The notes below the pieces were generated by a model, which was not told the DNA's origin, made no database searches, and saw only the letters and a program-made list of their open reading frames with translations. From positions 372,001-436,000 of the forward strand of contig CDRNVI010000083.1 of NCBI GenBank assembly GCA_977017575.1: a stretch of 64,000 nucleotides of DNA. The letters run 5' to 3'. Position numbers and translations under genes: made by a program. This document shows positions 4,081-26,277 of the stretch, in pieces (the stretch's first letter is position 1; every line of letters starts with the position of its first letter). This DNA comes from Paramoeba atlantica. Lineage: Eukaryota > Protista > Discosea.

Positions 4081-4114
4081 CAACAAGGTACAGAAACTGT
4101 ATCTTTATCGTTAA
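4081..4114 (-). other. Spliced-leader exon sequence at the 5' end of element A1
   Basis: Minus strand TTAACGATAAAGATACAGTTTCTGTACCTTGTTG followed by a U-rich 5' UTR and ATG, with no GT donor. Core CAGTTTCTGTAC and terminal TTG match kinetoplastid SLs. Confidence 0.85.
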
Positions 4115-5001: not shown

Positions 5002-5149
5002 CATTAGCCCTCATGCCATTTTGTATTTGAATAGTCCCTAAGCACATACACATCCGTTAATAACTTTTCTAATGAATTTACGAAATCAATCAATCAGCAG
5101 TCCCAGCCACGTCTATCTGGAATATTTATTTATTTATTTATTTATTTAT

Positions 5150-5174
5150 AACAAAAACAAAGGTCTTAACAAAA
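5150..5174. repeat. Short remnant of the AAAGG(G)TCTT-type repeat
   Basis: aacaaaaacaaaggtcttaacaaaa resembles arrays 58993-59616 and 62787-62844. Joined directly to the 3' end of element C'. Confidence 0.6.
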
Positions 5175-6843: not shown

Positions 6844-7004
6844 CAAAAAGGGGGTAATAAACAAAAAGGGGGTAATAAACAAAAAGGGGGTAATAAACAA
6901 AAAGGGGGTAATAAACAAAAAGGGGGTAATAAACAAAAAGGGGGTAATAAACAAAAAGGGGGTAATAAACAAAAAGGGGGTAATAAACAAAAAGGGGGTA
7001 ATAA
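6843..7004. repeat. Tandem array of 18-bp AAAAAGGGGGTAATAAAC, ~9 units
   Basis: Directly visible. Lies at the truncated 5' end of C'. Confidence 0.97.
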
Positions 7005-7934: not shown

Positions 7935-10900
7935 AGTGGAGCGCATATATTATATACGCGCCGATTACTATCAAATGTGAGACATGTTCACCTTCCCCCC
8001 TTCTCTCAATTTTCAAAGAGAAACTATCCCGAAAATGAAATCTATATAATTTTATAAGCTGACTCAGCTTATAGTGATATTGTGTTTAGAACTTATATAC
8101 TATATTCTTGAGTTTGCGTGCAGCCGTCTAAGTATTTCTTTAGCTGCGCATAAATCCCTAATCCATTAAGCTCCTGAATCGTCAGCTTCATTTCGAGTTC
8201 GACCTGTTTCCTGTTTAGCATGGCCGCGTCTGCTAGCGAGTGTACCAAGTTCTGCGTATTGCGGTGCAAAGCGCCTCCTGCCAGTACGGGTAAACATTGA
8301 AATGAGTCTTCACGAATTAAGTTCGTACGTACATATGTGTTGGACTTTCGCTGCAGCGCGTCATTCATGAGCTGTGTGCATTTCTTTCCACGATTAGACA
8401 TTGAGAGTTCGTGAATAACTGTCAGATCATAGAAGACCGCACCCGTGTTCCAATAGATCACGAGATCGGGGCCAGACCGACAAAGTTTTTTTCCTGCACA
8501 AGTCTTCTGATGTACCAACTGGTTTTCCGGACTGATTGTGGATCGGCAAGCGATGCACTTCCACGTAGAAAAGTTTCTAGGTTCCGTTTCACATGGGATG
8601 CCTGCTTTCACGCATAGACGATGTAAAAATCCGACAAGTGAGTTATGTTTCACGGTCGTATTTATACCTGAACATTGAGCACAGCCTGGGATATGGGTGA
8701 GGGCGTTTCGGTTATTGAGGAGAATACCGCACCCTGGACACAATAGACTGGTAGGTAGATCTGGGTGTTGGGCATTTAGTCGTGGCATAATCGCGAGTTT
8801 GAAGAGATGGGAAGGGATGTACTTCGCGTTGGAAAGGATCCAGTCGCTGTTTCCTTTGAAGGATGTGGCTTGTAGAATGGGCTTAATGTCGGGATCCGTT
8901 TGCAACTCTTTCAATACTTCGACATGATGAATGCTGGTGGAAGCTTTTTCGTCCACTGGTATGACTTTCATTGTCGAGTTCTTAGGAATAGACGGGTGTG
9001 ATGGCACCGCGTTGTCGATCCGAGCTGAAAAAGAGTTTCGGCGCTCAAGAACCGAGTAGCGGGATGCCACATATGCCGTCTCCCTAAGGGGACTGCTCGC
9101 TGTCAAACCCATTCCTCCCTTCTTAACGGGTAATCGTACAATTTTCATTTGATCAGGAGAGAGTGGACCAATCCAAGTCTCTACCACATTTTCAACCTCT
9201 TGATCGAATTGTGATGATGCTTTCTCTGTTGTTTCGGGCGGGTGGACACGAATCAGGTATTGTTGACGAACATTGGCACATTTTGCTAAAAGAATCATCG
9301 ATATATTATTGATGCCCATTCGTTTTAGCCGCCGAAAAGCTGTGACCTGCTTCTCTAGTTGACGCAAAAGTCGTTCACTTATTGTGTTGTTTTCTCCAAT
9401 ATACGCTCCGAGTACTTTGACCGCTTCGTCCTCCGACTTTACACCTTGGGTGCTCAGCGAATTCGGTATGGAATTTCCGGATTTTCCTCTGAACCAAACG
9501 CATTTTGCCTCGGCTAGTTTCACCTGTTTTTCTTCTAGGAGACCTTTGAGCCTAAAGAATGCTTTCTCCAGTTCGGTTGAATCTCGAGACACTAACGTTA
9601 TATCGTCAATGTATGCATTTATTTCAATACCTGGAAATTCGGAGGCCAGTGTCTCGAGTATTGGTTGACAGAATACGCAAAAGTAAAGACTAGCCAGAGC
9701 GGACCCTTGCCGTACACCTGCTGAGCTCATTATAATGTCCGTCAGGCTGCCATCGGAGCCATAAAATAAAAGTTCGGAAGCATTTGAATATTCGGCCGCA
9801 AAGAACCTTTGAAAGGGTTTCAGTGTAGCGAAAGCAAAAACGCACTTTGCAATTTCCTCTCGTGAGGGTGAGTTGAATGCATTTTGCATATCCACAGTCA
9901 GGATTGAGTGTCCGTCAAGCCAGCGGTCCCGCAACTTGTGTACGATTCGTTCGCACCCCGCTTGAGAGAATACGCCTTGTTGCATTGGTGCAAAGAGGGG
10001 TTCCAGTGACTTTTCGTATCTTTGCAGCAGAATTATTCCAGCTAATTTGCTAAATATTTCTCCAATAGCTACTGGGCGTACTCCCCCGTTGGGCTTGTCG
10101 ATGGCTACGAGTCTTGCCCGATTTAGACGCTGTAGAACTTGTCTAGATAGGAATCCGTTGATCAGATCGCTCATCATGTGACAAAGACTATTGCAACATG
10201 GCTCGTCGTCTATGAGAAGTCTAACGATGCTGTCGGTCGTACCTGTAGGCCCAGGGCTCACACCTTTTGCCAGTCGTCTACTTGCACATCTTAATTCTTG
10301 TACGGCTATTCCTGCGATAATCGGTGCATCTTCCGGAACTTTGAAATTGCAGTTTTGTTCTGGATGAAGTGCACGTAGTTTTTGGACTTTTTCTTGATCA
10401 GTCAACGTGCTCTTCTGAAAAGAACAGTCCAAAATCCTTGAAGCCTTCGATGTACAGTTTTCTAGCACCAAACGAGTGGCCCGTTTGATTGCTCGCTTGT
10501 CCTCATGAAAAAACTCGTCTTCTGGTTGATTGTGTTCAACTGTCTCTTGTTGTATGGGTCTTCGCCGCCGTTGTCTACTATTGGCTTGACGCACAGAAGC
10601 TAATGAAAGTTTCATTGCAGACAAAACTTTATTCCAAATTTGATTTCTTTGTACGTAGTCGCTTTCTGCATAGATGTGCATGATGTCCCTGTATATGGCA
10701 ATCACACTGGAGATAAAATCAGGACTAATGGTTTTCGCGGTTGGAATTGGGAGATGGTCTACGTCTGCAGCTCCTGTGTCCAGCTTAAGCGCTCTGGCCT
10801 TTTTAACATGTGTTTCTTCGCGGGTCTCAATAGGAAGGTTCTCGTCAATGGCTGGAGGAGCTCTGTACCAACGGATCTGATATACACGGATATTTTCTTG

Positions 10901-11906
10901 CGGAGGAAGAAAACCTGGAAAACTTTCTTCTGCACGATGGCCGAACAGACCTTTATAGCTCAAATGTAGTTTCGACGCCCCGGTCCGATTCGCGGATCGT
11001 GTTACGGTTCCTTCGGAGATGTTCAAGGCGGTTTGTTTATCGAATGTCCACGCCACTGTGCATTTGGTTCCTTTTTTTATTGAAGAACAAGACTTCTGTA
11101 TGCGCTCGAAAGGAATGGGGAATTCGGTGTCTGGATTTATCGATTTTATGATGCCACCGATGTGGTTGTCTTGTTCCGGATTTCCTTCGCTATAAAGTAT
11201 GCTGATGACTTGATTTGTTGTTTCAGTTGGTTTGTCCTTTTCTTGTGTGTCTGGCGTGATGCAGTCGTAGAACTCGGTGTTACTTCCATACTCCTTGGTT
11301 TTGGGGCCCGGAGTCGTGCTAATTACCTGTATTTCGCTCGATGTGTCAGGTCGGAAACCTTCGTCGCCGTTGGGCGCAATTTCGCCGTACTGAATCGGTT
11401 CGTTGTTTTGTACGCGTCCGTTTTCCTGGACGTTCTTTGTACTCTTGTTGTGCTCGTTTTCCTTTTGGATGATAGCATCCTGCAGAACTTTAGCCTTCTT
11501 ACGGTAACTGTCCATGGCAACGGCCGACGGATTTAACGGTCGTAAAACGAGTTCATCCAGAGTAGTGGGATCTTTTGGTGGAGGGGTGGCCGCCTGAGCG
11601 TACGTTGGTTCCTTGCTCCAGTTCGTAAATGCTGTGTTCCGAGCGGTGTTCGTTCTTATTTTGATGCATCCTTCTGGGTGACGAATGGTTGGGCTCTCGT
11701 CTTGCGACACTTTGTCAGCTCTTGTCTGAAGAAGGTTGAGTTGTTTGTTTCGCCGATTGAAGAAATTTGAAGACAGCAGTGCGTTCTTAATTGTGACTTT
11801 GCAGTCACTTTTCGGCAGTGGGGTCGGCGATCGACGCATCGACGGAGGAGGAGATTGTGGACACTCAGATGGCGTTGATGGTGGTGACTCAGATGGCGTT
11901 GATGGT
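7935..11906 (-). mobile_element. Family B copy 1, slightly 5'-truncated, inserted in C1
   Basis: Flanked by the TGGCCA duplication. Near-identical to B2 pieces at 26316-26707, 28065-30510 and 45777-47738. The 5' junction carries a 24-bp stutter. Confidence 0.92.
8093..11839 (-). CDS. RT-RLE polyprotein of family B (uninterrupted; true start is upstream, as in B2 at 47738)
   Basis: KGVSPGPTG, GVRPVAIGE, VDMQNAFN, GVRQGSALAS, AYIDD, LPVKKGGMG, CPGC...HIPGC..C...HN, SGPDLVIYW...YDLTV. Confidence 0.9.
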   Translation of the reverse strand: MRRSPTPLPKSDCKVTIKNALLSSNFFNRRNKQLNLLQTRADKVSQDESPTIRHPEGCIKIRTNTARNTAFTNWSKEPTYAQAATPPPKDPTTLDELVLRPLNPSAVAMDSYRKKAKVLQDAIIQKENEHNKSTKNVQENGRVQNNEPIQYGEIAPNGDEGFRPDTSSEIQVISTTPGPKTKEYGSNTEFYDCITPDTQEKDKPTETTNQVISILYSEGNPEQDNHIGGIIKSINPDTEFPIPFERIQKSCSSIKKGTKCTVAWTFDKQTALNISEGTVTRSANRTGASKLHLSYKGLFGHRAEESFPGFLPPQENIRVYQIRWYRAPPAIDENLPIETREETHVKKARALKLDTGAADVDHLPIPTAKTISPDFISSVIAIYRDIMHIYAESDYVQRNQIWNKVLSAMKLSLASVRQANSRQRRRRPIQQETVEHNQPEDEFFHEDKRAIKRATRLVLENCTSKASRILDCSFQKSTLTDQEKVQKLRALHPEQNCNFKVPEDAPIIAGIAVQELRCASRRLAKGVSPGPTGTTDSIVRLLIDDEPCCNSLCHMMSDLINGFLSRQVLQRLNRARLVAIDKPNGGVRPVAIGEIFSKLAGIILLQRYEKSLEPLFAPMQQGVFSQAGCERIVHKLRDRWLDGHSILTVDMQNAFNSPSREEIAKCVFAFATLKPFQRFFAAEYSNASELLFYGSDGSLTDIIMSSAGVRQGSALASLYFCVFCQPILETLASEFPGIEINAYIDDITLVSRDSTELEKAFFRLKGLLEEKQVKLAEAKCVWFRGKSGNSIPNSLSTQGVKSEDEAVKVLGAYIGENNTISERLLRQLEKQVTAFRRLKRMGINNISMILLAKCANVRQQYLIRVHPPETTEKASSQFDQEVENVVETWIGPLSPDQMKIVRLPVKKGGMGLTASSPLRETAYVASRYSVLERRNSFSARIDNAVPSHPSIPKNSTMKVIPVDEKASTSIHHVEVLKELQTDPDIKPILQATSFKGNSDWILSNAKYIPSHLFKLAIMPRLNAQHPDLPTSLLCPGCGILLNNRNALTHIPGCAQCSGINTTVKHNSLVGFLHRLCVKAGIPCETEPRNFSTWKCIACRSTISPENQLVHQKTCAGKKLCRSGPDLVIYWNTGAVFYDLTVIHELSMSNRGKKCTQLMNDALQRKSNTYVRTNLIREDSFQCLPVLAGGALHRNTQNLVHSLADAAMLNRKQVELEMKLTIQELNGLGIYAQLKKYLDGCTQTQEYSI

Positions 11907-14119
11907 TGGCCACACGAATGATATCAGCCTGACCCTTGTCTTTCATCAAAGACTCGCGCACTGCATTGTGGTGGACTTCTTCCGTAACCGCTTCATCAGT
12001 GAGAGGTCGTTGGCTGGAGAGCGAGTTCAGCGCTGGCAAATCCATTAGAGTAGCGGGAGCTGAAAGATGAATTGGTCGCTCCATAGCTGCTCGTTTGGAT
12101 TTGAAGAACGCTGCTTCGCGAATCGGTTCAGTTGGGGTGAGCCCGAGTCCTCCTTTCTTCAGTGGTAGCCTCATCCATGATATTTGGTCTTCGTTGAGGT
12201 TCCCGAACCATGAACATAGCGTGTTTGCCACCTGGGAATCAAACTGCCGACTGAGTTCCAAAGACGCATCAGGATGATGCACGCGTATGTCGTACCTGTG
12301 ACGCATATTCACGCAGTGCGATAGTAAAACGATAGAGACGTTGCTGGCCCCCATGTGCTGTAGGCGCCGGAAAGCTGCTTGATGCTTCACAACTTTTTGG
12401 ACTAATTTTTCGCTAACGCTTTCTTTCTCTCCGACGAAGGCCCCCAAAATGTTGGTAGCCCGGCTTTCGGATAAAACTCCCGCCTCCTGCAAGACGTGCG
12501 GAATGGGGATTCTTTCGATGCCTTCAAACCAGGCGCATTTTGTTGGGGATAATTCCACTAGCTTAGCAGTCAATAAAACTCGAAGACGGTTGTAAGCGTT
12601 GGCAATTAGTTCTGAGTCCTTTGATGCGAAGCTGATGTCGTCGATGTAGGCGTATATGCGAAGTGCCGGGAATTCTGAAGCAACGATCTCTAAAATTGGT
12701 TGCATAAACGCGCAGAACATAATCGTGGACAACGGCGACCCCTGCCTCACCCCGGCTGAACTTTTCAAGGTGGCTCCAAGATTGCCGTTGCTCCCGTAAT
12801 AAAGAAGTTCTGATGGACTGGAGTATTCGGCATTAAAGAGACGCTGAAAGGGGCGGAGACCATGGAATCCGAACACGGCTCTTGCAATTTCATCCCTGGC
12901 TGGTGAATTGAAGGCGTTTCTGAGATCAATAGCCAGAATGGCGCATCCCTCTGTGTATTTCTCGTTAAGCTTATGCACGACATGCTCGCAGCCAGACTTT
13001 ATCATAACACCAAACTGATAAGGCGCAAAGAGCGGGACAAGCTGTTTCTCGTGCCGCTGCAGAAGGACGATTTCGGCAAGCTTCAACCAGACCTCCCCCA
13101 CAGCGATTGGACGAATTCCGTTTCCAGGTTTGGGAATCGCTACAAGTCGCGCTCTCTTCACGCGTTTCATTACTTCTTCAGACAGTGATCCATTAATCAG
13201 GTCGGTAATCATGTGACACAAACTTAACGAGCACACCTCGTCGTCTAACAGGATGCGCAAAATTGAATCCGTTGTGCCTGTTGGTCCTGGCGCCGCCCCT
13301 TTGGCCATGCGTCTTCCGGCCTCCCGAAGCTCGACAGGCGTAATACACGCTGTCATCGGAGCATCTTGCGGGAGGCGAAATGTGGTGGGGAGATCTGGAT
13401 GCAAAGCACGAAGTTTTTCAATGGTTTCCGAGTCGCTGAGTGTTCGTGGTGTAATTTCCTGGTAATAACTCGGGACGCTTTGGAAACACACCCGTCTAAT
13501 GCCAGACTAGTTGCTTTCTTGATGGCCCGTTTGTCATCTATAAGACGTGGTCCGTTGGCGGTGGAGGTGTGTCCGTTTTGAGATTCGCCGTCTTGCAATG
13601 ACGAAAAATCGCGCGGGCGACGTCGACGTCGTTTCGCCGTTGCCTTCCGAATTGTGGCAAGAGAATATTTCATGGCTGATAACGTTCGATGCCATATGCG
13701 GTTCCTTTGTGGGTATGGGGATTCTGCGTAATCTCGAACGATGTCTCGGTAAATTGCAACTACGCAAGGAATGAATTCCGGTGCAACTGATCGCAGAGTA
13801 GGCATGGGCTCAAGATCTAGGTCGTTTTCTGTGTGTTGATAATTAACGCGAAGCGCCCGGTTAATTCTTTCTTCAGACCGGCAGCTTTTTATACTTCCAG
13901 GATCACTTTCCTGATGTGTGTTATTTTCCCACACGATCTTAAAGACGCGAACGTTTGCTTGCGGGGGAATATGACCAGTGAAGGTTGTTCCGATCTTGTG
14001 TCCCACAATCCCCACATACTCCATGGTCCATTTGTTCAAGTGCTTTCTTTTCTGCGACGCTTTAACGATTCCTTGTGATACGTTGAGGCTTGGCGAACAA
14101 TCAAAGCTCCAAGCCAAAA
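11907..14119 (-). pseudogene. Family C copy 1, 5' part (5'-truncated, frameshift near 13470)
   Basis: ORFs 13353-14231 and 11656-13491 overlap in different frames at the KASRV/QEITPRTLS junction. RT motifs GAAPGPTG, IDLRNAFN, GVRQGSPLS, AYIDD. Confidence 0.87.
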
Positions 14120-14210
14120 TAATAAACAAAAAGGGGGTAATAAACAAAAAGGGGGTAATAAACAAAAAGGGGGTAATAAACAAAAAGGGGGTAATAAACA
14201 AAAAGGGGGT
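14118..14210. repeat. Tandem array of 18-bp AAAAAGGGGGTAATAAAC, ~5 units
   Basis: Directly visible at the truncated 5' end of C1. Confidence 0.96.
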
Positions 14211-14283
14211 AGAACATAAACTTGATGTCATTTTTTTTGGTACGTAACGTGCGGTAGGTTCAAGGTTCTCCCTTAAGCCTTCA

Positions 14284-15038
14284 TTTTTTTTTTTTTTTTT
14301 TTTTTACATATAAAAAATCCTCTCTTTTTATGTATATATTATCGGAATTACTAATGTGAACACTATTGTGGTATTCTTGATTTATCGTGTATTCAAAATT
14401 CACCGTTAAAGATTTCCTATTTTTTTTTTAACGCACCTCGCTAACGGCATTCAACTGGTATTCACAGGGCCGTTTCATCTCCATCGACCGGTGCCAAGTA
14501 TTTCCTAAATTGAGACATTGCGACCGAACCATTCAGTTCTTGCAATTGCAAAGCGAAATCCTGGTGAATCTTATCGCGTGCCAGTCCACATGCATCTGCA
14601 AGAGCCGACAATAATTCCTTGGTGTTTGGATGCATGGCGCCTCCAGAAAGCATGGGAATGCACAAAAACTGCTGTTTCGGAATTAAGCTCGACACGACGT
14701 ACCGGTTAATCTTACGCTTGATAGCGTCTCGCATGAGAATTGCGCCGCTGCGTTTGATGTTGGATTGTGAAAGCTCGTGTATGACGGTAAAATCATAAAA
14801 GATGTCCCCGTCTGCCCAATGGATGACTAAATCTGGCCCGGAATGGTGGAATGAACCAGATCCGCAAGTCCTTTGGTGTGACGCTTTATTTTCACCGTCA
14901 ACAGTGGTACCGCACTTTCCGCAGGTGTATGTCGCGAATTGTCTAGGTTCGAGCTCGCAGGGAATGCCGGCCTTAATACATAGCGCATAGAGTTGACGCA
15001 CCATTCTGTTGTGTTTTGTGGTAGCGTTAATCCCAGAG
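14284..15038 (-). mobile_element. Family C copy 3, 3' part with poly(A)
   Basis: Near-identical to 7025-7740, with T-run 14284-14305. Resumes the 25932-26277 fragment across the 8-bp duplication TCCCAGAG. Confidence 0.9.
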
Positions 15039-15098
15039 ACGAAGTGAGAACTTCCGCAATGGCATTGTCAAAATTGAACGTTAATGCCTCAGTCGCAG

Positions 15099-16984
15099 TT
15101 TTTTTTTTTTTTTTTTTTTTATGAATCGCGGCATTGCCTCTATATTTTGACCCAGTAGACGAACCAAGTACATAGTAGGTCCATTGGGGGGTATACGAAT
15201 TTAAAACAAGCAATCAAATTAGCAAATCTTTTTATTTCCACAGAAGTATATTTTCTTTTTCTTTTTTCTCAGCCCAAAACTAGCAATTCAATCTCCCCTA
15301 GGTATATGATGATGATGATGTATTGGGCCTTTTGACTCCGAAAAGTTATGGCCCCTCAACTCCCCAAACGGGCAGTCCGAATACGTCTTGCGACGTATCC
15401 GGAGAGCCAGCCATAGCAAGCTACGGCTGACCTCCGCTTGGAGAGGAGTTAGGTTACAGCTAGGGAGGTGGGGTGCGCTATACCCCTGCGCCTTAGGTAA
15501 TGCAAATAAGGCGCCCCTTGACCAAAAAAAAACCACTCTATCTTTTGAGGGTGGATAAAAAAAAAACACAAACACATTCCAAAGATTAGCCCGAATGGCA
15601 CCCACCCTAGTTTCTTAGTACCTTGTTATATTCGGTACCGGGCGGTGCCACCCATTCTACGTTGCCAGAATGATATCCACCCTAATTATTTAGTGCCTCG
15701 TTTTACTGGCACCGGGTAGTGTCATCCATATTGTCTTCGTTGTGCTCACCCTAGTTCTTTAGCGTCTTGTTATGCGACGCCGGGTGAGTTAGCTCGGGAA
15801 GCTGGGATCGCTAAGTCCCATCATCCGACATAAGCCGGATGCCCTGACATAACCCCTAGGTATATACGACAAACAAGACACAGTAAAAATAAAAACAAGC
15901 AATCCAGGCCCAATCCATTCGCGCGTTCCGGACCGGGTCTTTCGACCACTCCACGGCCTGACTTGTGAACCCGTCCCTTGCTATACGGGAGGGCGCAGGC
16001 GCGGGCCTGTGTCGACAGCGACACGGTCGCGAAACAGGATGCTGGCCGACGGGGAGGAGATTCACTGCCCGTGTACTACCTCACTTGGGGTACCTAGCCC
16101 TCGCGGGCTAGGCGTGAGCATAGACTCTGTCGACCCGACCAGCACCCGTCCTGGATACCATGGCGTCTTCGTGCTGAAATAGGACTGTCAGTAGAGGCTT
16201 AAGCCTCTACCAAAGGATCCGCTGGGTCCTCTACGCGGATGCGCGAAACCATCATCCTGGCTTGAGAACGCATTAGCGTCACGTTCAGATCTGTTAGGAG
16301 ATCGTTTCGCGCTTGGTGTCGTGAAAGGAGCCCTTTGAATGCATTCGCCCGTTGGGTTCCGATGTCCCGGAGTAACGCTAGCGCACTCTCGCTCCAGGAA
16401 CCAAAGGATTCCACCACCATCGCTGTGAAGAGGTGTCCTGCTTTTTCTGCTTCTTGTCGCTGTCGCGCCTTGGTCTCCGCGAAGTGCTCGGCAAAAGACC
16501 CCGGGGTCACCCAGCTAGCATTGTGGACTGAGTCCAAATACTTTGTTTGCTGTGCGTGAGTGACCGCAAAATCTAGGACCATGCCTTGCGCTAAAGATCC
16601 TTTGGCGATGGAGGCATTTGGCAGAAATACGTCTGCTGGTCTCGTGAGAGCCCCCCCAGGACCCCGATTTCCCAAACTCTTCTCTCTCTGTGGCGCCAGG
16701 AAGGCTCTGCTGCAGAACGATGTAAATTGTTGGGCCAGAGCGTTGTGCCGTGAGATGATACCATGGCCGTTCTTGCAGAGCAAAGCGTGCTCTCCATTCT
16801 TGAGCAAGGGAAGGGTGCACCCGTCAGCTGGGCAAGGCCGATCTTCGGGGAAGACGTCCATGCCTAGCCACCAGCGTGTTAGGGTACGAAACTCCGTGTG
16901 GGTGAAAGCGTAGCCTCTGGTCTTGGAGGGAGTTGCGAAAGCCCAGTTTCCGGCCCCTTTTCCGGACTGCGAGATCCATCGCAG
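15099..16984 (-). mobile_element. Family D2 3' fragment (CCHC, RLE, structured 3' UTR, poly(A)) carrying a 545-bp insertion
   Basis: RWISQSGKGAGNW...CPADGC...HALLC...HN...RPADVFL...LDFAV...ESFGSW (ORF 16199-16861 and upstream frame). T-run 15099-15120. Confidence 0.88.
15308..15852 (-). mobile_element. Non-coding, highly structured retroelement with (CAT)n tail (SINE-like or isolated LINE 3' UTR)
   Basis: Flanked by the 13-bp TSD CCCCTAGGTATAT (15295-15307 and 15853-15865); the empty site is seen at 54040-54060. Tail is catcatcatcatcat on the minus strand. Related copies at 60945-61433 and 63453-63941. Confidence 0.85.
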
Positions 16985-17071
16985 TTTTTTTTTTTCTTTT
17001 TTTTTTTTTTATTGTTCCCCAACTTTGTGACCAACAACGCCCCGATACGAGATAGATAACTTACCAAATCC

Positions 17072-17678
17072 TTTTTTTTTTTTTTTTTTTTTTTGAACCT
17101 AGATCTTGTTTACATTACAACCGGTTAATAATTTCACCTTTGTGCTTTCCCTCTAATAATTTCACCGGTGCTCGCTGTTTCCCGTCGCTGTCTAGGCGTT
17201 TGGTTTTTTTTTTTTGGGGGGGGGAGTAGTATTGATTCTAATGTTTATATCTATGTTTCGAACTTTCCACCACTTAAAACCTTTCACCCTACTTCCTTCC
17301 TTCCCCTACTTCCTTCCCCTCACCGCACTCACTTCCCTTCCCCCACTTACGCCCTACCGACTGACGCGTCCCTACTGACCGGCTCGTCCGCACTGTGGCC
17401 CATGTGGTCCAGGACCTCCGCTCCCACCCCGTTAGCAGTATAAGATACTTTGAGTTGCTGTACGAGGGTGGGAGACTTAGAGGAGACGAAACGCATAGCC
17501 GCCGTCACGCCGAGGGCAAAAAGCGGGAAGAGGGACATGGCGGGACGGACGCGGGGACAAGGAGAAACGACGCCCGAGCCCATCGGTCTGGACCTCTGCC
17601 CCGACCCCGTGAGCAAGTATACAATACTTTGGGCTGCTGGCACGGGGGTGGGGGACGCAAGAAACGTTAAAAGAAAAG
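17072..17678 (-). other. Orphan poly(A)-tailed cDNA segment with two imperfectly repeated hairpins
   Basis: Bounded by T-runs 17072-17094 and 17679-17703, with no credible ORF. Repeats at ~17418-17480 and ~17597-17656. Confidence 0.55.
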
Positions 17679-18850
17679 TTTTTTTTTTTTTTTTTTTTTT
17701 TTTGCAATTAATAAGGGGGGAGAAGTATGAATCGCGGCATTGCCTCTATATTTTGACCCAGTAGACGAACCAAGTAGGTCCATTGGGGGGGGTATACGAG
17801 TTGAAAACAAACAATCAAATTAGCAATTCTTTTTCTGTCCACAGATGTACCTTTTTTCTCAGCCCAAAACTAGCAATTTAGTCTCCCCTAAGTATATACT
17901 ACAAACAAGAAAAACAGTAAAAATTAAAACAAGCAATCCATGCCCAATCCATTCGCGCGTTCCGGACCGGGTCTTTCGACCTCTCCACGGCCTGACTTGT
18001 GAACCCTTCCCTTGCTATACGGGAGGGCGCAGGCGCGGGCCTGTGTCGACAGCGACACGGTCACGAAACAGGATGCTGGCCGACGGGGAGGAGATTCACT
18101 ACCCGTGTACTACCTCACTTGGGGTACCTAGCCCTCGCGGGCTAGGCGTGAGTATAGACTCTGTCGACCCGACCAGCACCCGTCCTGGATACCATGGCGT
18201 CTTCGTGCTGAAATAGGACTGTCAGTCCGAATCCCTACCTATCTCACCTTGGGGTACCTCACTCACGAAGGCGAGGCGTGAGAATAGGCACTGTAGGCTC
18301 GATCGCTCCTGCCGGTCCGCAGCTGGCACGATTTGGTGTGGTGTCAGAGGGTGCCTCGTTCAGTAAAGCGAGACTGGCATGGATATCCACGTCTGCCATG
18401 CGTCTTACAAGCATTCGTGCCTGAGACCGCATGAGCGTAACGTTCATGTCCTGGAGAAGAAAAAACATTGACGCTTGCTCGGACATATCACCCTTACATG
18501 CTGCGGCTCTTTTTCCCGCGATCTTCTTCAGCATATGGAGGGACGTCGGGCTCCATGATCCGTACGATTCCACTACCATGGCGGTGAAATCATGTCCGGC
18601 CTCTATAGCCTCTTGCCTTTGTCCACGCTTGTGGTTCGTTGCATATTTCTCTGCGAAGGCCCCTGCAGCTACCATGCCAGCAGAACGGACCAGGTCCGTA
18701 TATTTCTGTTGCTGGACGTGGGTCACCGCAAAATCAAAGACAAGGCCTTTACCGAGCGTGTAGCTCGGAAGGAACACATCCCCTGGTCTTGTGAGTGCCC
18801 CCCCTGGACCTCTGTTGCCGAGGCTGTGCTCCCTTTTCGGAGACAAATTG

Positions 18851-18853
<3 letters not shown>
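17679..18853 (-). mobile_element. Family D1 3' fragment (RLE + 3' UTR + poly(A))
   Basis: Matches D1 from KANLSPKRE to the 3' UTR. T-run 17679-17703. Confidence 0.92.
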
Positions 18854-18881
<28 letters not shown>

Positions 18882-19971
18882 GTAGACGAACCAAGTAGGT
18901 CCATTGGGGGGGGTATACGAGTTGAAAACAAACAATCAAATTAGCAATTCTTTTTCTGTCCACAGATGTACCTTTTTTCTTAGCCCAAAACTAGCAATTT
19001 AGTCTCCCCTAAGTATATACTACAAACAAGAAAAACAGTAAAAATTAAAACAAGCAATCCATGCCCAATCCATTCGCGCGTTCCGGACCGGGTCTTTCGA
19101 CCTCTCCACGGCCTGACTTGTGAACCCTTCCCTTGCTATACGGGAGGGCGCAGGCGCGGGCCTGTGTCGACAGCGACACGGTCACGAAACAGGATGCTGG
19201 CCGACGGGGAGGAGATTCACTACCCGTGTACTACCTCACTTGGGGTACCTAGCCCTCGCGGGCTAGGCGTGAGTATAGACTCTGTCGACCCGACCAGCAC
19301 CCGTCCTGGATACCATGGCGTCTTCGTGCTGAAATAGGACTGTCAGTCCGAATCCCTACCTATCTCACCTTGGGGTACCTCACTCACGAAGGCGAGGCGT
19401 GAGAATAGGCACTGTAGGCTCGATCGCTCCTGCCGGTCCGCAGCTGGCACGATTTGGTGTGGTGTCAGAGGGTGCCTCGTTCAGTAAAGCGAGACTGGCA
19501 TGGATATCCACGTCTGCCATGCGTCTTACAAGCATTCGTGCCTGAGACCGCATGAGCGTAACGTTCATGTCCTGGAGAAGAAAAAACATTGACGCTTGCT
19601 CGGACATATCACCCTTACATGCTGCGGCTCTTTTTCCCGCGATCTTCTTCAGCATATGGAGGGACGTCGGGCTCCATGATCCGTACGATTCCACTACCAT
19701 GGCGGTGAAATCATGTCCGGCCTCTATAGCCTCTTGCCTTTGTCCACGCTTGTGGTTCGTTGCATATTTCTCTGCGAAGGCCCCTGCAGCTACCATGCCA
19801 GCAGAACGGACCAGGTCCGTATATTTCTGTTGCTGGACGTGGGTCACCGCAAAATCAAAGACAAGGCCTTTACCGAGCGTGTAGCTCGGAAGGAACACAT
19901 CCCCTGGTCTTGTGAGTGCCCCCCCTGGACCTCTGTTGCCGAGGCTGTGCTCCCTTTTCGGAGACAAATTG

Positions 19972-19974
<3 letters not shown>
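18854..19974 (-). mobile_element. Family D1 3' fragment, second head-to-tail copy
   Basis: Same 5' breakpoint (ttggcc then T-run) as the previous unit. Poly(A) is attached at ...ggttcgtctac. Confidence 0.92.
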
Positions 19975-20003
<29 letters not shown>

Positions 20004-23000
20004 GTAGACGAACCAAGTAGGTCCATTGGGGGGGGTATACGAGTTGAAAACAAACAATCAAATTAGCAATTCTTTTTCTGTCCACAGATGTACCTTTTTT
20101 CTTAGCCCAAAACTAGCAATTTAGTCTCCCCTAAGTATATACTACAAACAAGAAAAACAGTAAAAATTAAAACAAGCAATCCATGCCCAATCCATTCGCG
20201 CGTTCCGGACCGGGTCTTTCGACCTCTCCACGGCCTGACTTGTGAACCCTTCCCTTGCTATACGGGAGGGCGCAGGCGCGGGCCTGTGTCGACAGCGACA
20301 CGGTCACGAAACAGGATGCTGGCCGACGGGGAGGAGATTCACTACCCGTGTACTACCTCACTTGGGGTACCTAGCCCTCGCGGGCTAGGCGTGAGTATAG
20401 ACTCTGTCGACCCGACCAGCACCCGTCCTGGATACCATGGCGTCTTCGTGCTGAAATAGGACTGTCAGTCCGAATCCCTACCTATCTCACCTTGGGGTAC
20501 CTCACTCACGAAGGCGAGGCGTGAGAATAGGCACTGTAGGCTCGATCGCTCCTGCCGGTCCGCAGCTGGCACGATTTGGTGTGGTGTCAGAGGGTGCCTC
20601 GTTCAGTAAAGCGAGACTGGCATGGATATCCACGTCTGCCATGCGTCTTACAAGCATTCGTGCCTGAGACCGCATGAGCGTAACGTTCATGTCCTGGAGA
20701 AGAAAAAACATTGACGCTTGCTCGGACATATCACCCTTACATGCTGCGGCTCTTTTTCCCGCGATCTTCTTCAGCATATGGAGGGACGTCGGGCTCCATG
20801 ATCCGTACGATTCCACTACCATGGCGGTGAAATCATGTCCGGCCTCTATAGCCTCTTGCCTTTGTCCACGCTTGTGGTTCGTTGCATATTTCTCTGCGAA
20901 GGCCCCTGCAGCTACCATGCCAGCAGAACGGACCAGGTCCGTATATTTCTGTTGCTGGACGTGGGTCACCGCAAAATCAAAGACAAGGCCTTTACCGAGC
21001 GTGTAGCTCGGAAGGAACACATCCCCTGGTCTTGTGAGTGCCCCCCCTGGACCTCTGTTGCCGAGGCTGTGCTCCCTTTTCGGAGACAAATTGGCCTTTT
21101 GACAAACGTCAAAGAACTGGAGGGCCAAGGCATTATGCCTCGCAGAGATCCCGTAGTCGTGTTTACAGACCAATGCGTGGTCTCCTTGTGGTCCCATCGG
21201 AAGCGTGCAGCCTGAGACGGGACAGGGGTGTGTTTCTGGATATACTTTTTGTCCTAGCCACCAGGTGCACAGGGTGCGGAACTCCGTTTTAGTAAAGGCG
21301 TGCCCCTTTTCCCTGGAGGGCGTGACAAACAGCCAGTCACCTGCCCCTTTTCCAGATTGAGATATCCAACGTGCCCTCGTTTGAGGATCAGCTTTCTGAT
21401 ATGCATCGGTGTACTCGCGGGAAGAAATTGCACGGCTGAGCACCTTTTGGCGTGCGACTCGGTCGTTGGAAGATGAAAACTCGTGGTCGAGTTTCGTTTG
21501 TTCAAAGTAAGGGGTCGTCGTGTCTCCGGGTGGTGCTACGGGAAGATTCGCCGGGAGAGGTCGTTTTGATCCACGGAGACCCAGTACTTTTTTGAGGTGA
21601 GAGAGAGAGGAAGCGTGCTGAGGGGAAATTAGACCGGTTTTCTCTTCCAGGACGCTGGTGCCCGCTCGTGAATTGACGTCCAGTACTGCATCAGCAAAAT
21701 CTTTTGCGTCGAGGGAGTTCCAGTTGTCCTTATCCGCTGCGAAAGAGACTGAGGAAACGTACGCCGATGAGGCATGCATCGCTGAAGAGCGCAGCCCGAA
21801 TCCACCGTAAGATTTTGGACGTTGTACTTGTGCGGCAGCATCTTCATTTAAAGGACATATAGAGCGTTCCGTGGTATGTAGTATTGCTGTGTCAAGTTCT
21901 TCGCATAACTCATGGACGGAATTGGTGGGTGTGGTTCTAAGAGAATATGCCATTTGGCTGAAACCAGCACACTGTCGGATGAGTGCGAGGGAAACTTGCG
22001 GGTCTTCCATGTATTCGATCGCGGCTAGGGATTCTTCAGCAGGCAACAGGGTGTGTTCACGGAGAAATTCTGTGCAGAAATCAGTCGTTCCTACAGGGCT
22101 ACCTAAAATTGAAAAATTTCCCTCGCTTGTCTTTTTAGTCGTCGGGATGTTGCCGAAGCTGTCCAGGTGTTCGGCGGATTCAGGATGTGTGATCGCCTCG
22201 CACTTGTTGGCGTTTAGGAAGATGCCCCACTGTGGGCCGACTCGTTCGATGATGTCTAAAGCTCGTCTGACGTCTTGAGCCTTCCCCCCGAGAATGCCGT
22301 CATCCAAATACCACAGATTAAGCTTAAGAAGACCAGGAAGTTGTCGATCTATCTCGGTAGTAACCAGTTGCATGACGAGGGAAAAAAGTAAAGGACCCAA
22401 CGGATCCCCTTGTTGCACACCCTCCTTTGAAGAAATCTGACGGAAACCGTAAGTGAGAATACTCTCGGTGGTGTAACACCATTCAACCCACGGGGAGAGC
22501 TCCGGGAAGTGCTCCCTCGTAAGTGCAGCAAAGGCAGTTCTTGAGATGTTGTTAAAGGCATTTCGCAGATCCACTTTACATAGCGTGAAATCAGAACTTC
22601 CCGCCTGAGAGGCCATCACGTGCCTACACAGGTGGATCAGGCGTTCGGCCCCTGCAGGTGTTGCGACTCCGTATTGATGAGGCCAGAGTAGTTTGCTTGC
22701 CTTTTCCTTTACTGCGGAGCAGGCCGCTTTGCTCACAAGTCGCCTTATTGTTTCGCCGGCAGCAATAGGACGGACATCATTTTCTCCTTTTTCTAAGGCA
22801 CATAGTCTGGCGCCGCCGAAGAACTTCTGGACTTGGAGACAACCTTTCCCGGACAGCAAGAGGTTCATGACTTCCTTGAGATAGAAAAGCGGCTGTACCT
22901 TGTCATCAGGGTGTGCTGCTAAGGCGCTCTGGAGATGCTCAGGGCGGAGGCCCATGGTGCCAGCCGATGTTCCGCGCCGGAAACTGCGTAGTGCCTTTTC

Positions 23001-23998
23001 AACTTCGCCTTCGGATAGATGTAAAGGCTCTCCTTCTATGGGTCGGAATGTGACGGAAGATGATAAAGGCAATCTACCTGGGTGCTTCGATTGGAGTTTT
23101 TCGTAAGTTTCTTCGGATTCAGGTGCCATCGGTGCTGCTGTAAGGGCTGCCATCGCACGGGAAAACTCCCCTTGTCTGGCCAGCCACTCGACTCGTTTCG
23201 CCGCCTTGCCGGACTCGTCCACTTCCTCATCGTCGCTCCTCTCCCGCTTCTTTACCATTTGCGCAACAGATTCGTTCCACAGTGCCGCGTATTCCCTGGA
23301 TTCCCAGCGATCCATGCGTTGGCTCGTTTTCGTGGTATAGGACGAATTTCCTTTTCGTCCCCCTCTTTTGGGCGCGGGCAGGACACATTTTGGGAGCATC
23401 GCTAAGCGTGTCCAGGCCTCAACCGAGTTCTCTCTAACCACTGCAGCCATTGTTTGAGTCAAAACAGAGGCCCACTGTTGTCTGCATCGGAATGGTACAT
23501 CTTTGCATGTGTTGATGGCGTAAGAGCAGACACAATCAAGAGACGGGAGCGAATCCTTGTAAATTTGGGAAATGGAAGCCTCTTCGGTTTCTGGCTCACA
23601 GGTTAGCGACGAGGTGTAAGAGCCCAAGGAGTCTTGACATTTTTCCTCATGGGAAGCTTTTTTATTGTGATCATAGTGCTTGCCGCATGAGGGGCATAAG
23701 AAACGTCCTTCTTTTTCCCACCATTCCGAAGGCACAGTATCGCTATGTTGGCTTGCGACGTGATGGTAGTAGGCCTGCCACTTCCCTCCGTGTGATGCGG
23801 TGCTCCAGTTGCACACTTCGACTGGACAGGTGCGACGTCTCATTGTGTCTCGTCTAGCTGGTTGGCGAGTCTTGGAATCTTTACTAACCCCTCTCTCGAA
23901 AATTTTGGGCGTCGACTTTTGGCTAGAAAGAGGGCTTTTTCGTGGGAGAAGCCTCGCTGTGGCCATGGAATGTGGTTCGTACCGCTCTGGGGTTTGGC
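19975..23998 (-). mobile_element. Family D1 near-full-length CRE-like element (no SL, probably 5'-truncated)
   Basis: Long ORF, 3' UTR and T-run 19975-20003. The 5' end is fused to the poly(A) of the upstream retrocopy. Confidence 0.92.
20502..23966 (-). CDS. Zinc-finger-RT-RLE polyprotein (family D1)
   Basis: CPVEVC...HHVASQH and FLCPSCGKH...HEEKC fingers; VRPIAAGE, VDLRNAFN, GVQQGDPLGPLLF, WYLDD; CPVSGC...HALVC...HN; RPGDVFL...FDFAV...ESYGSW. The start Met (MATARL) is uncertain; the poly-K upstream is translated poly(A). Confidence 0.88.
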   Translation of the reverse strand: MATARLLPRKSPLSSQKSTPKIFERGVSKDSKTRQPARRDTMRRRTCPVEVCNWSTASHGGKWQAYYHHVASQHSDTVPSEWWEKEGRFLCPSCGKHYDHNKKASHEEKCQDSLGSYTSSLTCEPETEEASISQIYKDSLPSLDCVCSYAINTCKDVPFRCRQQWASVLTQTMAAVVRENSVEAWTRLAMLPKCVLPAPKRGGRKGNSSYTTKTSQRMDRWESREYAALWNESVAQMVKKRERSDDEEVDESGKAAKRVEWLARQGEFSRAMAALTAAPMAPESEETYEKLQSKHPGRLPLSSSVTFRPIEGEPLHLSEGEVEKALRSFRRGTSAGTMGLRPEHLQSALAAHPDDKVQPLFYLKEVMNLLLSGKGCLQVQKFFGGARLCALEKGENDVRPIAAGETIRRLVSKAACSAVKEKASKLLWPHQYGVATPAGAERLIHLCRHVMASQAGSSDFTLCKVDLRNAFNNISRTAFAALTREHFPELSPWVEWCYTTESILTYGFRQISSKEGVQQGDPLGPLLFSLVMQLVTTEIDRQLPGLLKLNLWYLDDGILGGKAQDVRRALDIIERVGPQWGIFLNANKCEAITHPESAEHLDSFGNIPTTKKTSEGNFSILGSPVGTTDFCTEFLREHTLLPAEESLAAIEYMEDPQVSLALIRQCAGFSQMAYSLRTTPTNSVHELCEELDTAILHTTERSICPLNEDAAAQVQRPKSYGGFGLRSSAMHASSAYVSSVSFAADKDNWNSLDAKDFADAVLDVNSRAGTSVLEEKTGLISPQHASSLSHLKKVLGLRGSKRPLPANLPVAPPGDTTTPYFEQTKLDHEFSSSNDRVARQKVLSRAISSREYTDAYQKADPQTRARWISQSGKGAGDWLFVTPSREKGHAFTKTEFRTLCTWWLGQKVYPETHPCPVSGCTLPMGPQGDHALVCKHDYGISARHNALALQFFDVCQKANLSPKREHSLGNRGPGGALTRPGDVFLPSYTLGKGLVFDFAVTHVQQQKYTDLVRSAGMVAAGAFAEKYATNHKRGQRQEAIEAGHDFTAMVVESYGSWSPTSLHMLKKIAGKRAAACKGDMSEQASMFFLLQDMNVTLMRSQARMLVRRMADVDIHASLALLNEAPSDTTPNRASCGPAGAIEPTVPILTPRLRE

Positions 23999-24117
23999 TT
24001 TTTTTTTTTTTTTTTTTTTTTAAGTCTTTTTTTTTTACGTGACTCGATAAGTTCATCTCGCACATCAACTTCTTATCGACTTTACATCACAACTTGCGGG
24101 AGGACGCAGACTAGTCC

Positions 24118-25872
24118 TCACGTTTCTCTTAGCTTTCCGTGAGCGCGAAGATTGCTCATCCGGAAGTTGACGAAACCCAGCCGAGCTGAAAGGAGGTTTG
24201 GGCGCTCGAGGCCAGAAATCACAACCTGCGGATAAGACACCAACACGCTTCGCGCAGACAAGTCCTCATGGCACGTTTCCCGTAGCTTTCCGTGAGCGCG
24301 AAGATTACTCATCCGGAAGTTGACGAAACCAAGCCAAGCTGAAAGGAGGTTTGGGCGCTCGAGGTCAGAAATCACAACCTGCGGATAAGAAACCAACACG
24401 CTTCGCGCAGACAAGTCCTCATGGCACGTTTCCCGTAGCTTTCCGTGAGCGCGAAGATTACTCATCCGGAAGTTGACGAAACCCAGCCGAGCTGAAAGGA
24501 GGTTTGGGCGCTCGAGGCCAGAAATCACAACCTGCGGATAAGAAACCAACACGCTTCGCGCAGACAAGTCCTCATGGCACGTCTCCCGTAGCTTTCCGTG
24601 AGCGCGAAGATTACTCATCCGGAAGTTGACGAAACCCAGCCGAGCTGAAAGGAGGTTTGGGCGCTCGAGGCCAGAAATCACAACCTGCGGATAAGAAACC
24701 AACACGCTTCGCGCAGACAAGTCCTCATGGCACGTTTCCCGTAGCTTTCCGTGAGCGCGAAGATTGCTCATCCGGAAGTTGACGAAACCAAGCCAAGCTG
24801 AAAGGAGGTTTGGGCGCTCGAGGTCAGAAATCACAACCTGCGGATAAGAAACCAACACGCTTCGCGCAGACAAGTCCTCATGGCACGTTTCCCGTAGCTT
24901 TCCGTGAGCGCGAAGATTACTCATCCGGAAGTTGACGAAACCCAGCCGAGCTGAAAGGAGGTTTGGGCGCTCGAGGCCAGAAATCACAACCTGCGGATAA
25001 GAAACCAACACGCTTCGCGCAGACAAGTCCTCATGGCACGTCTCCCGTAGCTTTCCGTGAGCGCGAAGATTACTCATCCGGAAGTTGACGAAACCCAGCC
25101 GAGCTGAAAGGAGGTTTGGGCGCTCGAGGCCAGAAATCACAACCTGCGGATAAGAAACCAACACGCTTCGCGCAGACAAGTCCTCATGGCACGTTTCCCG
25201 TAGCTTTCCGTGAGCGCGAAGATTGCTCATCCGGAAGTTGACGAAACCCAGCCGAGCTGAAAGGAGGTTTGGGCGCTCGAGGCCAGAAATCACAACCTGC
25301 GGATAAGAAACCAACACGCTTCGCGCAGACAAGTCCTCATGGCACGTTTCCCGTAGCTTTCCGTGAGCGCGAAGATTGCTCATCCGGAAGTTGACGAAAC
25401 CCAGCCGAGCTGAAAGGAGGTTTGGGCGCTCGAGGCCAGAAATCACAACCTGCGGATAAGAAACCAACACGCTTCGCGCAGACAAGTCCTCATGGCACGT
25501 TTCCCGTAGCTTTCCGTGAGCGCGAAGATTACGCATCCGGAAGTTGACGAAACCCAGCCGAGCTGAAAGGAGGTTTGGGCGCTCGAGGCCAGAAATCACA
25601 ACCTGCGGATAAGAAACCAACACGCTTCGCGCAGACAAGTCCTCATGGCACGTTTCCCGTAGCTTTCCGTGAGCGCGAAGATTGCTCATCCGGAAGTTGA
25701 CGAAACCCAGCCGAGCTGAAAGGAGGTTTGGGCGCTCGAGGCCAGAAATCACAACCTGCGGATAAGACAACGACACGCTTCGCGCAGACATGTCCTCATG
25801 GCACGTTTCCCGTAGCTTTCCGGGAGCCTTTCTCCTCTTTCGAATGATGGGGCGCGTGCCCCCGGCAGACAT
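24118..25872 (-). CDS. 584-aa protein composed of ~11 copies of a 51-aa repeat; function unknown
   Basis: MSAGGTRPIIRKRRKAP followed by (GKLRETCHEDLSARSVLVSYPQVVISGLERPNLLSARLGFVNFRMSNLRAH)n. It is the only minus-strand frame open through the repeat, and ATG lies 24 nt after the SL. The upstream part of the listed 716-aa ORF is family C sequence plus SL. Confidence 0.55.
   Translation of the reverse strand: MSAGGTRPIIRKRRKAPGKLRETCHEDMSARSVSLSYPQVVISGLERPNLLSARLGFVNFRMSNLRAHGKLRETCHEDLSARSVLVSYPQVVISGLERPNLLSARLGFVNFRMRNLRAHGKLRETCHEDLSARSVLVSYPQVVISGLERPNLLSARLGFVNFRMSNLRAHGKLRETCHEDLSARSVLVSYPQVVISGLERPNLLSARLGFVNFRMSNLRAHGKLRETCHEDLSARSVLVSYPQVVISGLERPNLLSARLGFVNFRMSNLRAHGKLRETCHEDLSARSVLVSYPQVVISGLERPNLLSARLGFVNFRMSNLRAHGKLRETCHEDLSARSVLVSYPQVVISDLERPNLLSAWLGFVNFRMSNLRAHGKLRETCHEDLSARSVLVSYPQVVISGLERPNLLSARLGFVNFRMSNLRAHGKLRETCHEDLSARSVLVSYPQVVISGLERPNLLSARLGFVNFRMSNLRAHGKLRETCHEDLSARSVLVSYPQVVISDLERPNLLSAWLGFVNFRMSNLRAHGKLRETCHEDLSARSVLVSYPQVVISGLERPNLLSARLGFVNFRMSNLRAHGKLRET
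24122..25812. repeat. 153-bp tandem repeat, ~11 units
   Basis: cgtagctttccgtgagcgcg recurs at 24281, 24434 and onward. A variant unit (aagccaag...gaggtcaga) recurs 459 bp apart. Confidence 0.97.
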
Positions 25873-25895
25873 CAGGTTTAAAAACTTAAAAAAAA

Positions 25896-25931
25896 CAACA
25901 AGGTACAGAAACTGTATCTTTATCGTTAAAG
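25896..25931 (-). other. Spliced-leader exon sequence (36 nt)
   Basis: Minus strand CTTTAACGATAAAGATACAGTTTCTGTACCTTGTTG, followed by a T-rich UTR and not GT. Confidence 0.87.
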
Positions 25932-26277
25932 TCCCAGAGCATTTAACGCATCCGGACACGTGAGCAATTGCGCTGCTGGAGGTGAGGAGAACGTGGCACC
26001 CAGGACATTGTACCTTCGATGGTAGCAACGGATGCTCTATTCCGAAACGGGGCATTATCGCCAACGTGAAAAGTCGCGAAGGAATGAATTTGGTGCAAGC
26101 GGTGAGCCAATTGTAATTCCCTTTCGCACTGGCCACACGAATGATATCAGCCTGACCCTTGTCTTTCATCAAAGACTCGCGCACTGCATTGTGGTGGACT
26201 TCTTCCGTAACCGCTTCATCAGTGAGAGGTCGTTGGCTGGAGAGCGAGTTCAGCGCTGGCAAATCCATTAGAGTAGC
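25932..26277 (-). mobile_element. Family C copy 3, internal fragment upstream of the 10.9-kb insertion
   Basis: MDLPALNSL...ADIIRVASAKGNYNW...CVKCSG. Matches 11907-12055 joined to 7730-7934. Confidence 0.88.

Follow-up and report, generated by a model that had tools for sequence, protein, structure and literature searches.

A 10.9-kb chain of poly(A)-joined RNA copies within one 8-bp target duplication in Paramoeba atlantica, a candidate product of serial template switching by an R2-like reverse transcriptase

We analysed a stretch of 64,000 nucleotides from Paramoeba atlantica (GCA_977017575.1, contig CDRNVI010000083.1, positions 372,001 to 436,000 of the forward strand; hereafter the window), which is a dense field of retrotransposons lacking long terminal repeats (non-LTR) and in which host mRNAs carry a spliced leader (SL) of the kinetoplastid/diplonemid type. 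A 10.9-kb block at 15031-25939, lying within a retrotransposon of a family designated C, consists of eight pieces, all sense on the minus strand, the poly(A) of each meeting the head of the next, and the whole is bounded by a single 8-bp target duplication. This block is the clearest genomic trace found here of an R2-like reverse transcriptase (RT) copying several RNAs serially in one integration, part of it probably being a later duplication. We consider the chances about even that the block arose by one target-primed integration by an R2-like enzyme of the D type (represented by the elements D1 and D2, described below), during which the cDNA switched repeatedly onto poly(A) tails and ended on an SL-bearing mRNA, with some changes following later.

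Target site and anatomy of the block

A preliminary description of the window, made from the sequence alone, had reported an 8-bp duplication around the block, and this was borne out: TCCCAGAG was found twice, at 15031-15038 and at 25932-25939. Once the block was removed, the minus-strand flanks joined to read ..SGCVKCSG|INATTKHN.., a sequence from the CCHC region in the family C endonuclease domain, and the frame was restored, as the same description had held. An empty paralogous site is present in the same window. An uninterrupted family C copy (7019-7738|7739-7934, open reading frame (ORF) 7162-8016) has a frame open across the site, reproduces the joined flanks at 99.6-100% identity, and carries one copy of TCCCAGAG at the 7738|7739 site. 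Since the intact site holds this sequence only once, the duplication is real and not a product of chance. An uninterrupted form of family C, representing an allele or another paralogue, was also present in k-mer contigs of the sequencing runs, with an exact match to the left flank.

It had further been remarked that the target continues with TTAACG, resembling the start of the SL. The match itself is real (SL nucleotides 3-8), but it lies outside the junction that was formed and may be due to chance. A target preference for TTAACG was rejected, as the motif occurs at chance frequency in the window (30 matches on both strands) and is not present at the target of the D1 insertion in locus L003.

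The features of the block and its flanks are listed below in window coordinates. The fetched loci are designated L001 to L007, of which L002 corresponds to the locus of the block as found in a different assembly or haplotype, with about 0.1% base differences.

14319-15030, minus: host family C element, 3' part, comprising the end of the restriction-like endonuclease (RLE) domain and the 3' untranslated region (UTR)
15031-15038, minus: downstream copy of the target duplication (in the sense of the element), CTCTGGGA on the minus strand; single copy in the paralogous empty site at 7731-7738; the same in L002
15039-15098, minus: 60-nt fragment from the interior of the ORF of a family-C-like retrotransposon, directly adjoining the duplication, no poly(A)
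15099-15120, minus: A22 tail of the D2 piece (A23 in L002)
15121-16984, minus: 3' part of D2, RLE-coding end and 3' UTR, 5'-truncated, ORF open; 15121-16846 is shared by L002
15308-15852, minus: 545-bp repeat element nested inside the D2 piece, flanked by a 13-bp duplication of its own, CCCCTAGGTATAT (15295-15307 and 15853-15865), and ending in (CAT)n
16985-17010, minus: A14-G-A11 tail of the 61-nt orphan (T11-C-T14 on the plus strand)
17011-17071, minus: 61-nt orphan, the 3' end of an RNA
17072-17094, minus: A23 tail of the 584-nt orphan
17095-17678, minus: 584-nt orphan, its 5' end starting with the SL-like CTTTTCTTTTAACG
17679-17703, minus: A25 tail of D1 tail copy 1
17704-18853, minus: D1 3' tail copy 1 (D1 nt 3313-4460), normal 3' end ..ATTAATTGC
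18854-19974, minus: A28 and D1 3' tail copy 2 (tail body 18882-19974), short 3' end ..GGTTCGTCTAC
19975-23998, minus: A29 and D1 without its first 412 nt (D1 body 20004-23998), ORF otherwise open
23999-24021, minus: A23 tail of retrocopy X
24022-25931, minus: SL-headed retrocopy X of a trans-spliced mRNA, with SL, 5' UTR, 11.2 repeats of 153 nt, and a 3' UTR ending in ..A10 GACTT
25932-25939, minus: upstream copy of the 8-bp duplication, also in L002
25940-26268, minus: host family C element, segment upstream of the insertion (..CPGCHV..SGCVKCSG)

Read 5' to 3' on the minus strand, the order is thus retrocopy X, truncated D1, D1 tail copy 2, D1 tail copy 1, the 584-nt orphan, the 61-nt orphan, the D2 part and the 60-nt fragment. 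The preliminary count of about eight different RNAs agrees with the number of pieces, but these represent only six RNA species. Likewise, the pieces are co-oriented as described, and seven of the eight end in A22-A29, but the joining of every piece through a poly(A) does not extend to the 3'-most, 60-nt piece, which is tail-less.

When 30 nt of parent context from run contigs were added, the 60-nt fragment could be aligned with family C ORF residues 408-437, which follow the RT core. Both this fragment (15093-15098) and the D2 piece (16979-16984) open with CTGCGA on the minus strand, right after a poly(A); the CT may consist of added nucleotides, because D2 relatives have Ala-Arg-Trp where D2 reads Leu-Arg-Trp. 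The 545-bp element within D2 is a separate insertion event; it is missing from a sibling D copy near 54050, which is uninterrupted, and is skipped by one run contig (X4). This element contains three internal units of about 70 nt, is 81% related to window positions 60940-61213 and 63448-63721, and differs between the two assemblies in the length of its (CAT)n.

No relative of the 61-nt orphan was found in the window or in the fetched loci, and the 584-nt orphan had no match in Rfam; contigs 97-99% alike to the latter are present in the sequencing runs. An internal C9-A12 at 17204-17224 means that the 584-nt orphan may be two pieces. The long D1 is 99.6% identical to the full-length D1 of L001 and has lost the SL, the 5' UTR and the first 124 codons.

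The D1 enzyme and the spliced-leader retrocopy

In its full form (L001), D1 comprises an SL, a 5' UTR, a single ORF of 1278 aa, a 3' UTR and poly(A). The RT domain was recognized as Pfam RVT_1 (E 1e-17) and is of the non-LTR type, its best matches among sequences of solved structures being R2Bm and R2Tg. In an alignment of 11 sequences, the C-terminal 270 residues of D1 showed invariant C, C, H and C, followed by conserved D/D/H columns. When an AlphaFold model of this domain (predicted local distance difference test score, pLDDT, 70) was compared with the PDB by Foldseek, the seven best matches were all R2 proteins (E 1e-5 to 2e-3), and PD-(D/E)xK nucleases came next. Pfam detected no Exo_endo_phos (apurinic/apyrimidinic (AP) endonuclease) domain in D1. 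Judged from the sequences and the structural model, the combination of an RT, a CCHC motif with a predicted PD-(D/E)xK nuclease, a single ORF and no AP-endonuclease characterizes D1/D2, the presumed driver of the integration, as R2-type (RLE) non-LTR retrotransposons.

A simple full-length insertion of D1 in L003 is flanked by the 8-bp duplication CTTATTTA, the same length as that of the block. This D1 sits after A20 + CTTATTTA, so that the nick falls exactly at the 3' edge of the A20 tract. The D1 copy in L004 has unrelated flanks. CT is found at the start of three of the six distinct block pieces and also of both known D-type duplications. Among relatives of the D family in the protein collection, the called ORFs of P0005, P0013, P0014, P0011 and P0021 are mosaics of several types: a 3' UTR-poly(A)-35-codon internal fragment joined to the N-terminus of another element, an internal duplication, a fusion of RLE to RT thumb, and a fusion to the RNase H of another type of long interspersed nuclear element (LINE).

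The SL, CTTTAACGATAAAGATACAGTTTCTGTACCTTGTTG, occurs in four genomic copies in the window, against 0.08 expected, and retrocopy X begins at the SL with CTTTAACG. L006 holds a parent-like gene of X, whose sequence covers the repeats and the 3' UTR as far as ..A10 GACTT and then continues into other sequence; A23 alone is therefore the tail of X. These data demonstrate that X is a true processed mRNA copy, with the SL at its 5' end and an A23 that is not encoded in the parent-like gene. The possibility that GACTT is a ninth, very small template was rejected, since A10 GACTT is encoded in that gene and belongs to the 3' UTR of X itself. The 153-nt (51-codon) array of X counts 11.2 units in the window (24119-25827) and 5.2 units in L002 (9155-9945). 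In L006 (named circular, 1-21416), the parent-like gene lies within a 9.77-kb unit that is repeated at least three times and also contains ORFs with matches to IS1595-type DDE transposases and two SL copies.

Head-to-tail poly(A) chains were also seen at L001, L003, L005 and L007. Joints of poly(A) with the SL were surveyed at L001 (2374, 7123, 9898 and 14398), L003 (2412), L005 (2968) and window position 54245, and took the forms CTTTAACG, CT+CTTTAACG, GATA+CTTTAACG, CTTA+TTTAACG and GC+TAACG, with fillers of 0-4 nt. The variable first nucleotides of the leader suggest non-templated additions or misreading near the cap. The idea that such chains are made by an SL-specific nick was not supported, as the fillers vary (none, CT, GC, CTTA or GATA) and the internal pieces of the block are leaderless. 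L007 (named circular, 1-16396) holds four or more tandem repeats, with a period of 4.47 kb, of a composite unit in which three or more pieces are joined through poly(A) runs (A13-15, A21 and A20-22).

One integration or several events

In the proposed mechanism, a D-type enzyme, combining an R2-like RT with an RLE, would have made staggered nicks 8 bp apart in the family C element. Synthesis of cDNA would have started on a tail-less RNA end, either a 60-nt fragment of an element like C or the end of a D2 transcript that had read through. Several times over, the cDNA in synthesis would then have left one RNA internally for the poly(A) tail of the next, its oligo(dT) end, made at an A run of the donor, re-pairing with the tail of the acceptor. 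The templates would have been taken in the order D2, the 61-nt RNA end, the 584-nt RNA, the D1 tail, the long D1 and a mature trans-spliced mRNA; the last would have been copied to its SL 5' end, and the cDNA joined there to the upstream target. Later on, the 545-bp element would have inserted with its own duplication and one D1 tail unit would have duplicated in tandem, while on the other allele 3.3 kb would have been deleted and the 153-nt array would have shrunk. The single duplication, the arrangement, orientation and junctions of the pieces, the processed nature of the last one and the type of enzyme are established by the data; the unity of the event, the way in which templates were switched and the sequence of the later changes we infer.

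Because template jumps and insertions into a tail yield an identical X-A(n)-Y (X and Y here standing for any two successive pieces), the case for one event is built on indirect points. No duplication is seen at the seven poly(A) junctions, as against the clear 13-bp one at the nested 545-bp element. The 60-nt and 61-nt pieces fit aborted templates better, and are unlikely to be free-standing insertions. Also in favour are the 3'-most piece, which lacks a tail and comes from within an ORF, and the length of the duplication, which equals that at the simple D1 insertion of L003. The chain starts exactly at the SL, unlike the read-through of an array, and therefore at least the joint between D1 and retrocopy X was made on separate RNAs. 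Two donor breakpoints can be compared with the parent, AA|GCC at D1 nt 413 and AAAA|GGCC at nt 3313, and both lie just past A runs, which suggests that poly(A) tails were reached by copy-choice switching and not by jumping from 5' ends. As regards the end-to-end jumping of the R2 style invoked in the preliminary description, only the last template was copied to its 5' end, and these two D1 donors were left at internal A runs. Its broader proposal, a single integration with serial jumps that ended at a cap, gives the best fit to the one duplication around the block, the lack of duplications inside it and the SL end, as a reading rather than a proof and with donors left internally.

Several points weigh against a single integration. 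Insertion of Y into the tail of X with an all-A duplication gives the same X-A(n)-Y as jumps do. Duplication-free head-to-tail chains are common in the genome (L001 and L007), and a pre-existing chain could have been copied as one RNA. No parents were found for four pieces (the 60-nt fragment, D2 and the two orphans, with searches of the orphans beyond the window and the fetched loci limited to the 584-nt one without its 3' end), so that equal age and donor microhomology were checked in part only. The ends shared among the D1 tails are not expected from independent jumps. Finally, the interior at 16847-20138 is supported by the assembly of the window only, and no run contig bridges its poly(T) tracts; the run evidence consists of k-mer contigs from four runs over 14600-20500, each ending at poly(T) tracts, in which paralogues and alleles are indistinguishable.

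The locus L002 bears on several of these questions. One member of the D1 protein cluster, P0042, is an ORF running from the 3' UTR of X through its tail into the truncated D1, and the contig that encodes it is L002; ten ORFs of the window had no exact entry in the protein collection, and the assembly of the window is therefore not indexed there. L002 has in common with the window the duplication, the junction of the SL-headed X with D1, and the D2-poly(A)-fragment junction. Its block measures only 6685 bp, because it has fewer X repeats and because window positions 16847-20138 are replaced by a 15-nt filler. At this 3.3-kb deletion (L002 13890-13925 versus window 16847-20165), the filler repeats adjacent D1 sequence (taat-gtttgtag) and is accompanied by a 16-nt loss alongside; the joint looks like microhomology or templated-insertion end joining. 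The breakpoints fall inside the D1 3' UTR and inside the D2 ORF, and the D1 and D2 of the window are colinear with their families across both points; L002 is therefore a deletion derivative and not a stepwise intermediate. The preliminary description had pointed to alleles in intermediate states with internal duplications as the mark of stepwise insertion; L002 is not such an allele, and the seven poly(A) joints lack duplications. L002 supports the outer structure of the block and is silent on its interior. L002-like alleles were also seen in the run contigs.

Two further differences between the assemblies lie outside the block. A 9.7-kb segment of the window (31543-41278), made up of a 5.4-kb array of a 17-bp unit and a retroelement, is absent from L002 (3403-3419), where the 17 bp that flank it in the window occur once, resembling an empty allele. 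A 794-bp, 5'-truncated copy of an RLE element (43119-43912), with an A22 end, an internal A14 located 72 nt earlier and TTACC flanks, is likewise absent from L002; it has the appearance of a recent insertion that is still polymorphic, and may comprise two pieces.

It is rather probable that a smaller original chain was enlarged at the DNA level, unequal crossing-over between the tail of the long D1 and copy 1 having made copy 2, and the repeat array having changed alike; this would modify a single integration and not replace it. The three D1 tails (copy 1, copy 2 and that of the long D1) differ at one position in 1093 nt. Copy 2 combines the 5' junction of copy 1, with the same breakpoint, and the 3' junction of the long D1, with the same short 3' end, and the A runs there are 28 and 29. 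The short end is missing from the three other full D1 copies, those of L001, L003 and L004, all of which end at the normal site ..TTATTAAYTGC. From this sequence comparison, copy 2 is probably a tandem duplicate. Enlargement of this kind also agrees with the 11.2 and 5.2 array units on the two alleles and with the tandem amplification of a piece-plus-tail unit in L007. However, an identical arrangement would be expected if one D1 RNA had been copied twice and the switch had fallen on the same A4 run each time, and in contig X4 a poly(A) lies 3 nt from the short 3' end, so that a cluster of alternative poly(A) sites may exist. Either way, one D1 tail is best explained by a later tandem duplication or by re-copying of the same RNA, which is simpler than an independent jump.

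A different account, which we consider unlikely, is that a pre-existing head-to-tail array was transcribed as one long RNA (polycistronic transcription being usual in such organisms) and copied into this site in one pass, at most one real switch, that onto the SL mRNA, being needed. The frequency of poly(A)-to-5' chains (L001) and the composite unit repeated in L007 would provide for such an array, and the tail-less 60-nt end beside the A22 of D2 resembles read-through from a junction of D2 with a truncated element. Nevertheless, no block junction recurred in the seven fetched loci, and the D1 protein cluster held one junction-type ORF only, on one contig (both cover a small part of the genome). 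The 5' end, moreover, is exactly an SL followed by a normal mRNA 5' UTR, unlike a read-through RNA, and the account shifts the origin of the chain to another place.

Stepwise accretion, in which the SL retrocopy came first with the 8-bp duplication and later elements entered the poly(A) or the 3' edge of the previous piece, leaving all-A duplications that are invisible, appears quite improbable to us. It would result in the same final structure as jumps; the D1 in L003 was indeed nicked exactly at the edge of an A tract, and the CT starts of half of the distinct pieces and of both D-type duplications could mean a nick preference. However, growth on the 3' side requires at least six successive hits in one target of about 25 bp, and in addition the tail-less 60-nt fragment would have had to land precisely at the boundary of a tail and the older duplication; no leftover A run lies between this last piece and the duplication. 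A nick at the tail edge with the usual 8-bp stagger should re-duplicate CTCTGGGA, and the extra copies that stepwise addition on the 5' side would also be expected to leave are not present. The sole demonstrable secondary insertion, that of the 545-bp element, went elsewhere and made a 13-bp duplication, and the other allele, L002, is not an intermediate.

An assembly artefact, by which the interior at 16847-20138 (the orphans and D1 tails) was mis-joined or over-expanded, is very improbable: this segment is missing in L002, and none of the run contigs could be seen to span its junctions, but the L002 breakpoints inside the D1 3' UTR and the D2 ORF, with a partly templated filler, are the mark of a deletion, D1 and D2 of the window are colinear with their families there, and A23-A29 joints linking unique sequences without relation to each other are not something that assemblers create.

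Comparison with known systems

Chimeric retrocopies formed by LINE template switching within a single integration are known as U6-L1 in mammals and as WEIRD/Mg-SINE/MGL in Magnaporthe, and are bipartite or tripartite (PMC2104539). The block resembles them in that different RNAs are joined in one orientation, with one target duplication around the whole and switching at preferred donor sites (PMC2104539). In the known cases, two or three parts are directly fused, with one 3' poly(A), by a LINE of the AP-endonuclease type. In contrast, the present block has eight pieces from six RNA species, tails of 22-29 nt on all but the first-copied piece, a likely RLE-type enzyme and an SL cap end. Compared with the features by which chimeras of the Buzdin/Gogvadze type are recognized, the block shows mixed RNAs, the same orientation and a single duplication, but not direct fusion with a single 3' poly(A).

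Template jumping by R2-type RTs has been studied thoroughly in vitro, and tools for sequencing and genome writing make use of it, whereas a cellular role is still in doubt. The RT of Bombyx R2 carries out serial end-to-end template jumping in vitro (PMC8594491, PMC8857657). As in that reaction, in which 1-2 nt at the 3' end of the cDNA pair with the 3' end of the acceptor, an R2-like RT would here have joined cDNAs of separate RNAs. In vitro, the RT departs from the 5' end of the donor once non-templated nucleotides have been added (PMC8857657). In the block, the two testable donors were left internally after A runs (A2 and A4), and all acceptors were poly(A) tails. To our knowledge, no genomic sequence produced by many such jumps has yet been reported from the R2-like clade. 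A single integration, if true, would represent high-multiplicity template jumping in vivo, with poly(A) tails favoured for landing and a capped SL end able to terminate the chain. It would account in a simple way for how the head-to-tail chains, the composite units in tandem and the mosaic ORFs of this genome arose, and D1, with its intact ORF of 1278 aa, would be a natural candidate enzyme for such switching. We put forward only tentatively, as a possibility that is somewhat doubtful, that tail-directed switching is a routine in vivo property of these R2-like enzymes, by which at least six cellular or element RNAs would be joined into a cDNA of more than 10 kb per integration and by which those chains, composite units and mosaic ORFs would be built. 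This would be a genome-building mode not described for any retrotransposon.

CRE1/CRE2, SLACS and CZAR are RLE retrotransposons of trypanosomatids that insert only at one position of the SL RNA genes. D1 is like them in its single ORF, its RT with a C-terminal CCHC/restriction-like endonuclease, and its host with a kinetoplastid-type SL. Unlike them, the elements studied here are not confined to SL genes and inserted elsewhere (the family C ORF, L003 and L004), and the leader at their 5' ends is complete, as expected of trans-splicing. The homology searches gave no match to a named CRE, SLACS or CZAR sequence.

HeT-A/TART of Drosophila and GilM/GilT of Giardia form head-to-tail terminal arrays that grow by addition at chromosome ends. 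There, as in the block, a poly(A) abuts the next, often truncated, 5' end, all units have one orientation, and no duplications lie between them. The present chain, in contrast, is internal rather than terminal, being bounded by an 8-bp target duplication within an ORF whose paralogous site is intact. Taken together, these comparisons suggest that template-switch chimeras themselves are known, and that what is new here is a chain of eight pieces, joined through their tails within one target duplication, from an RLE-type element and with an SL at its 5' end.

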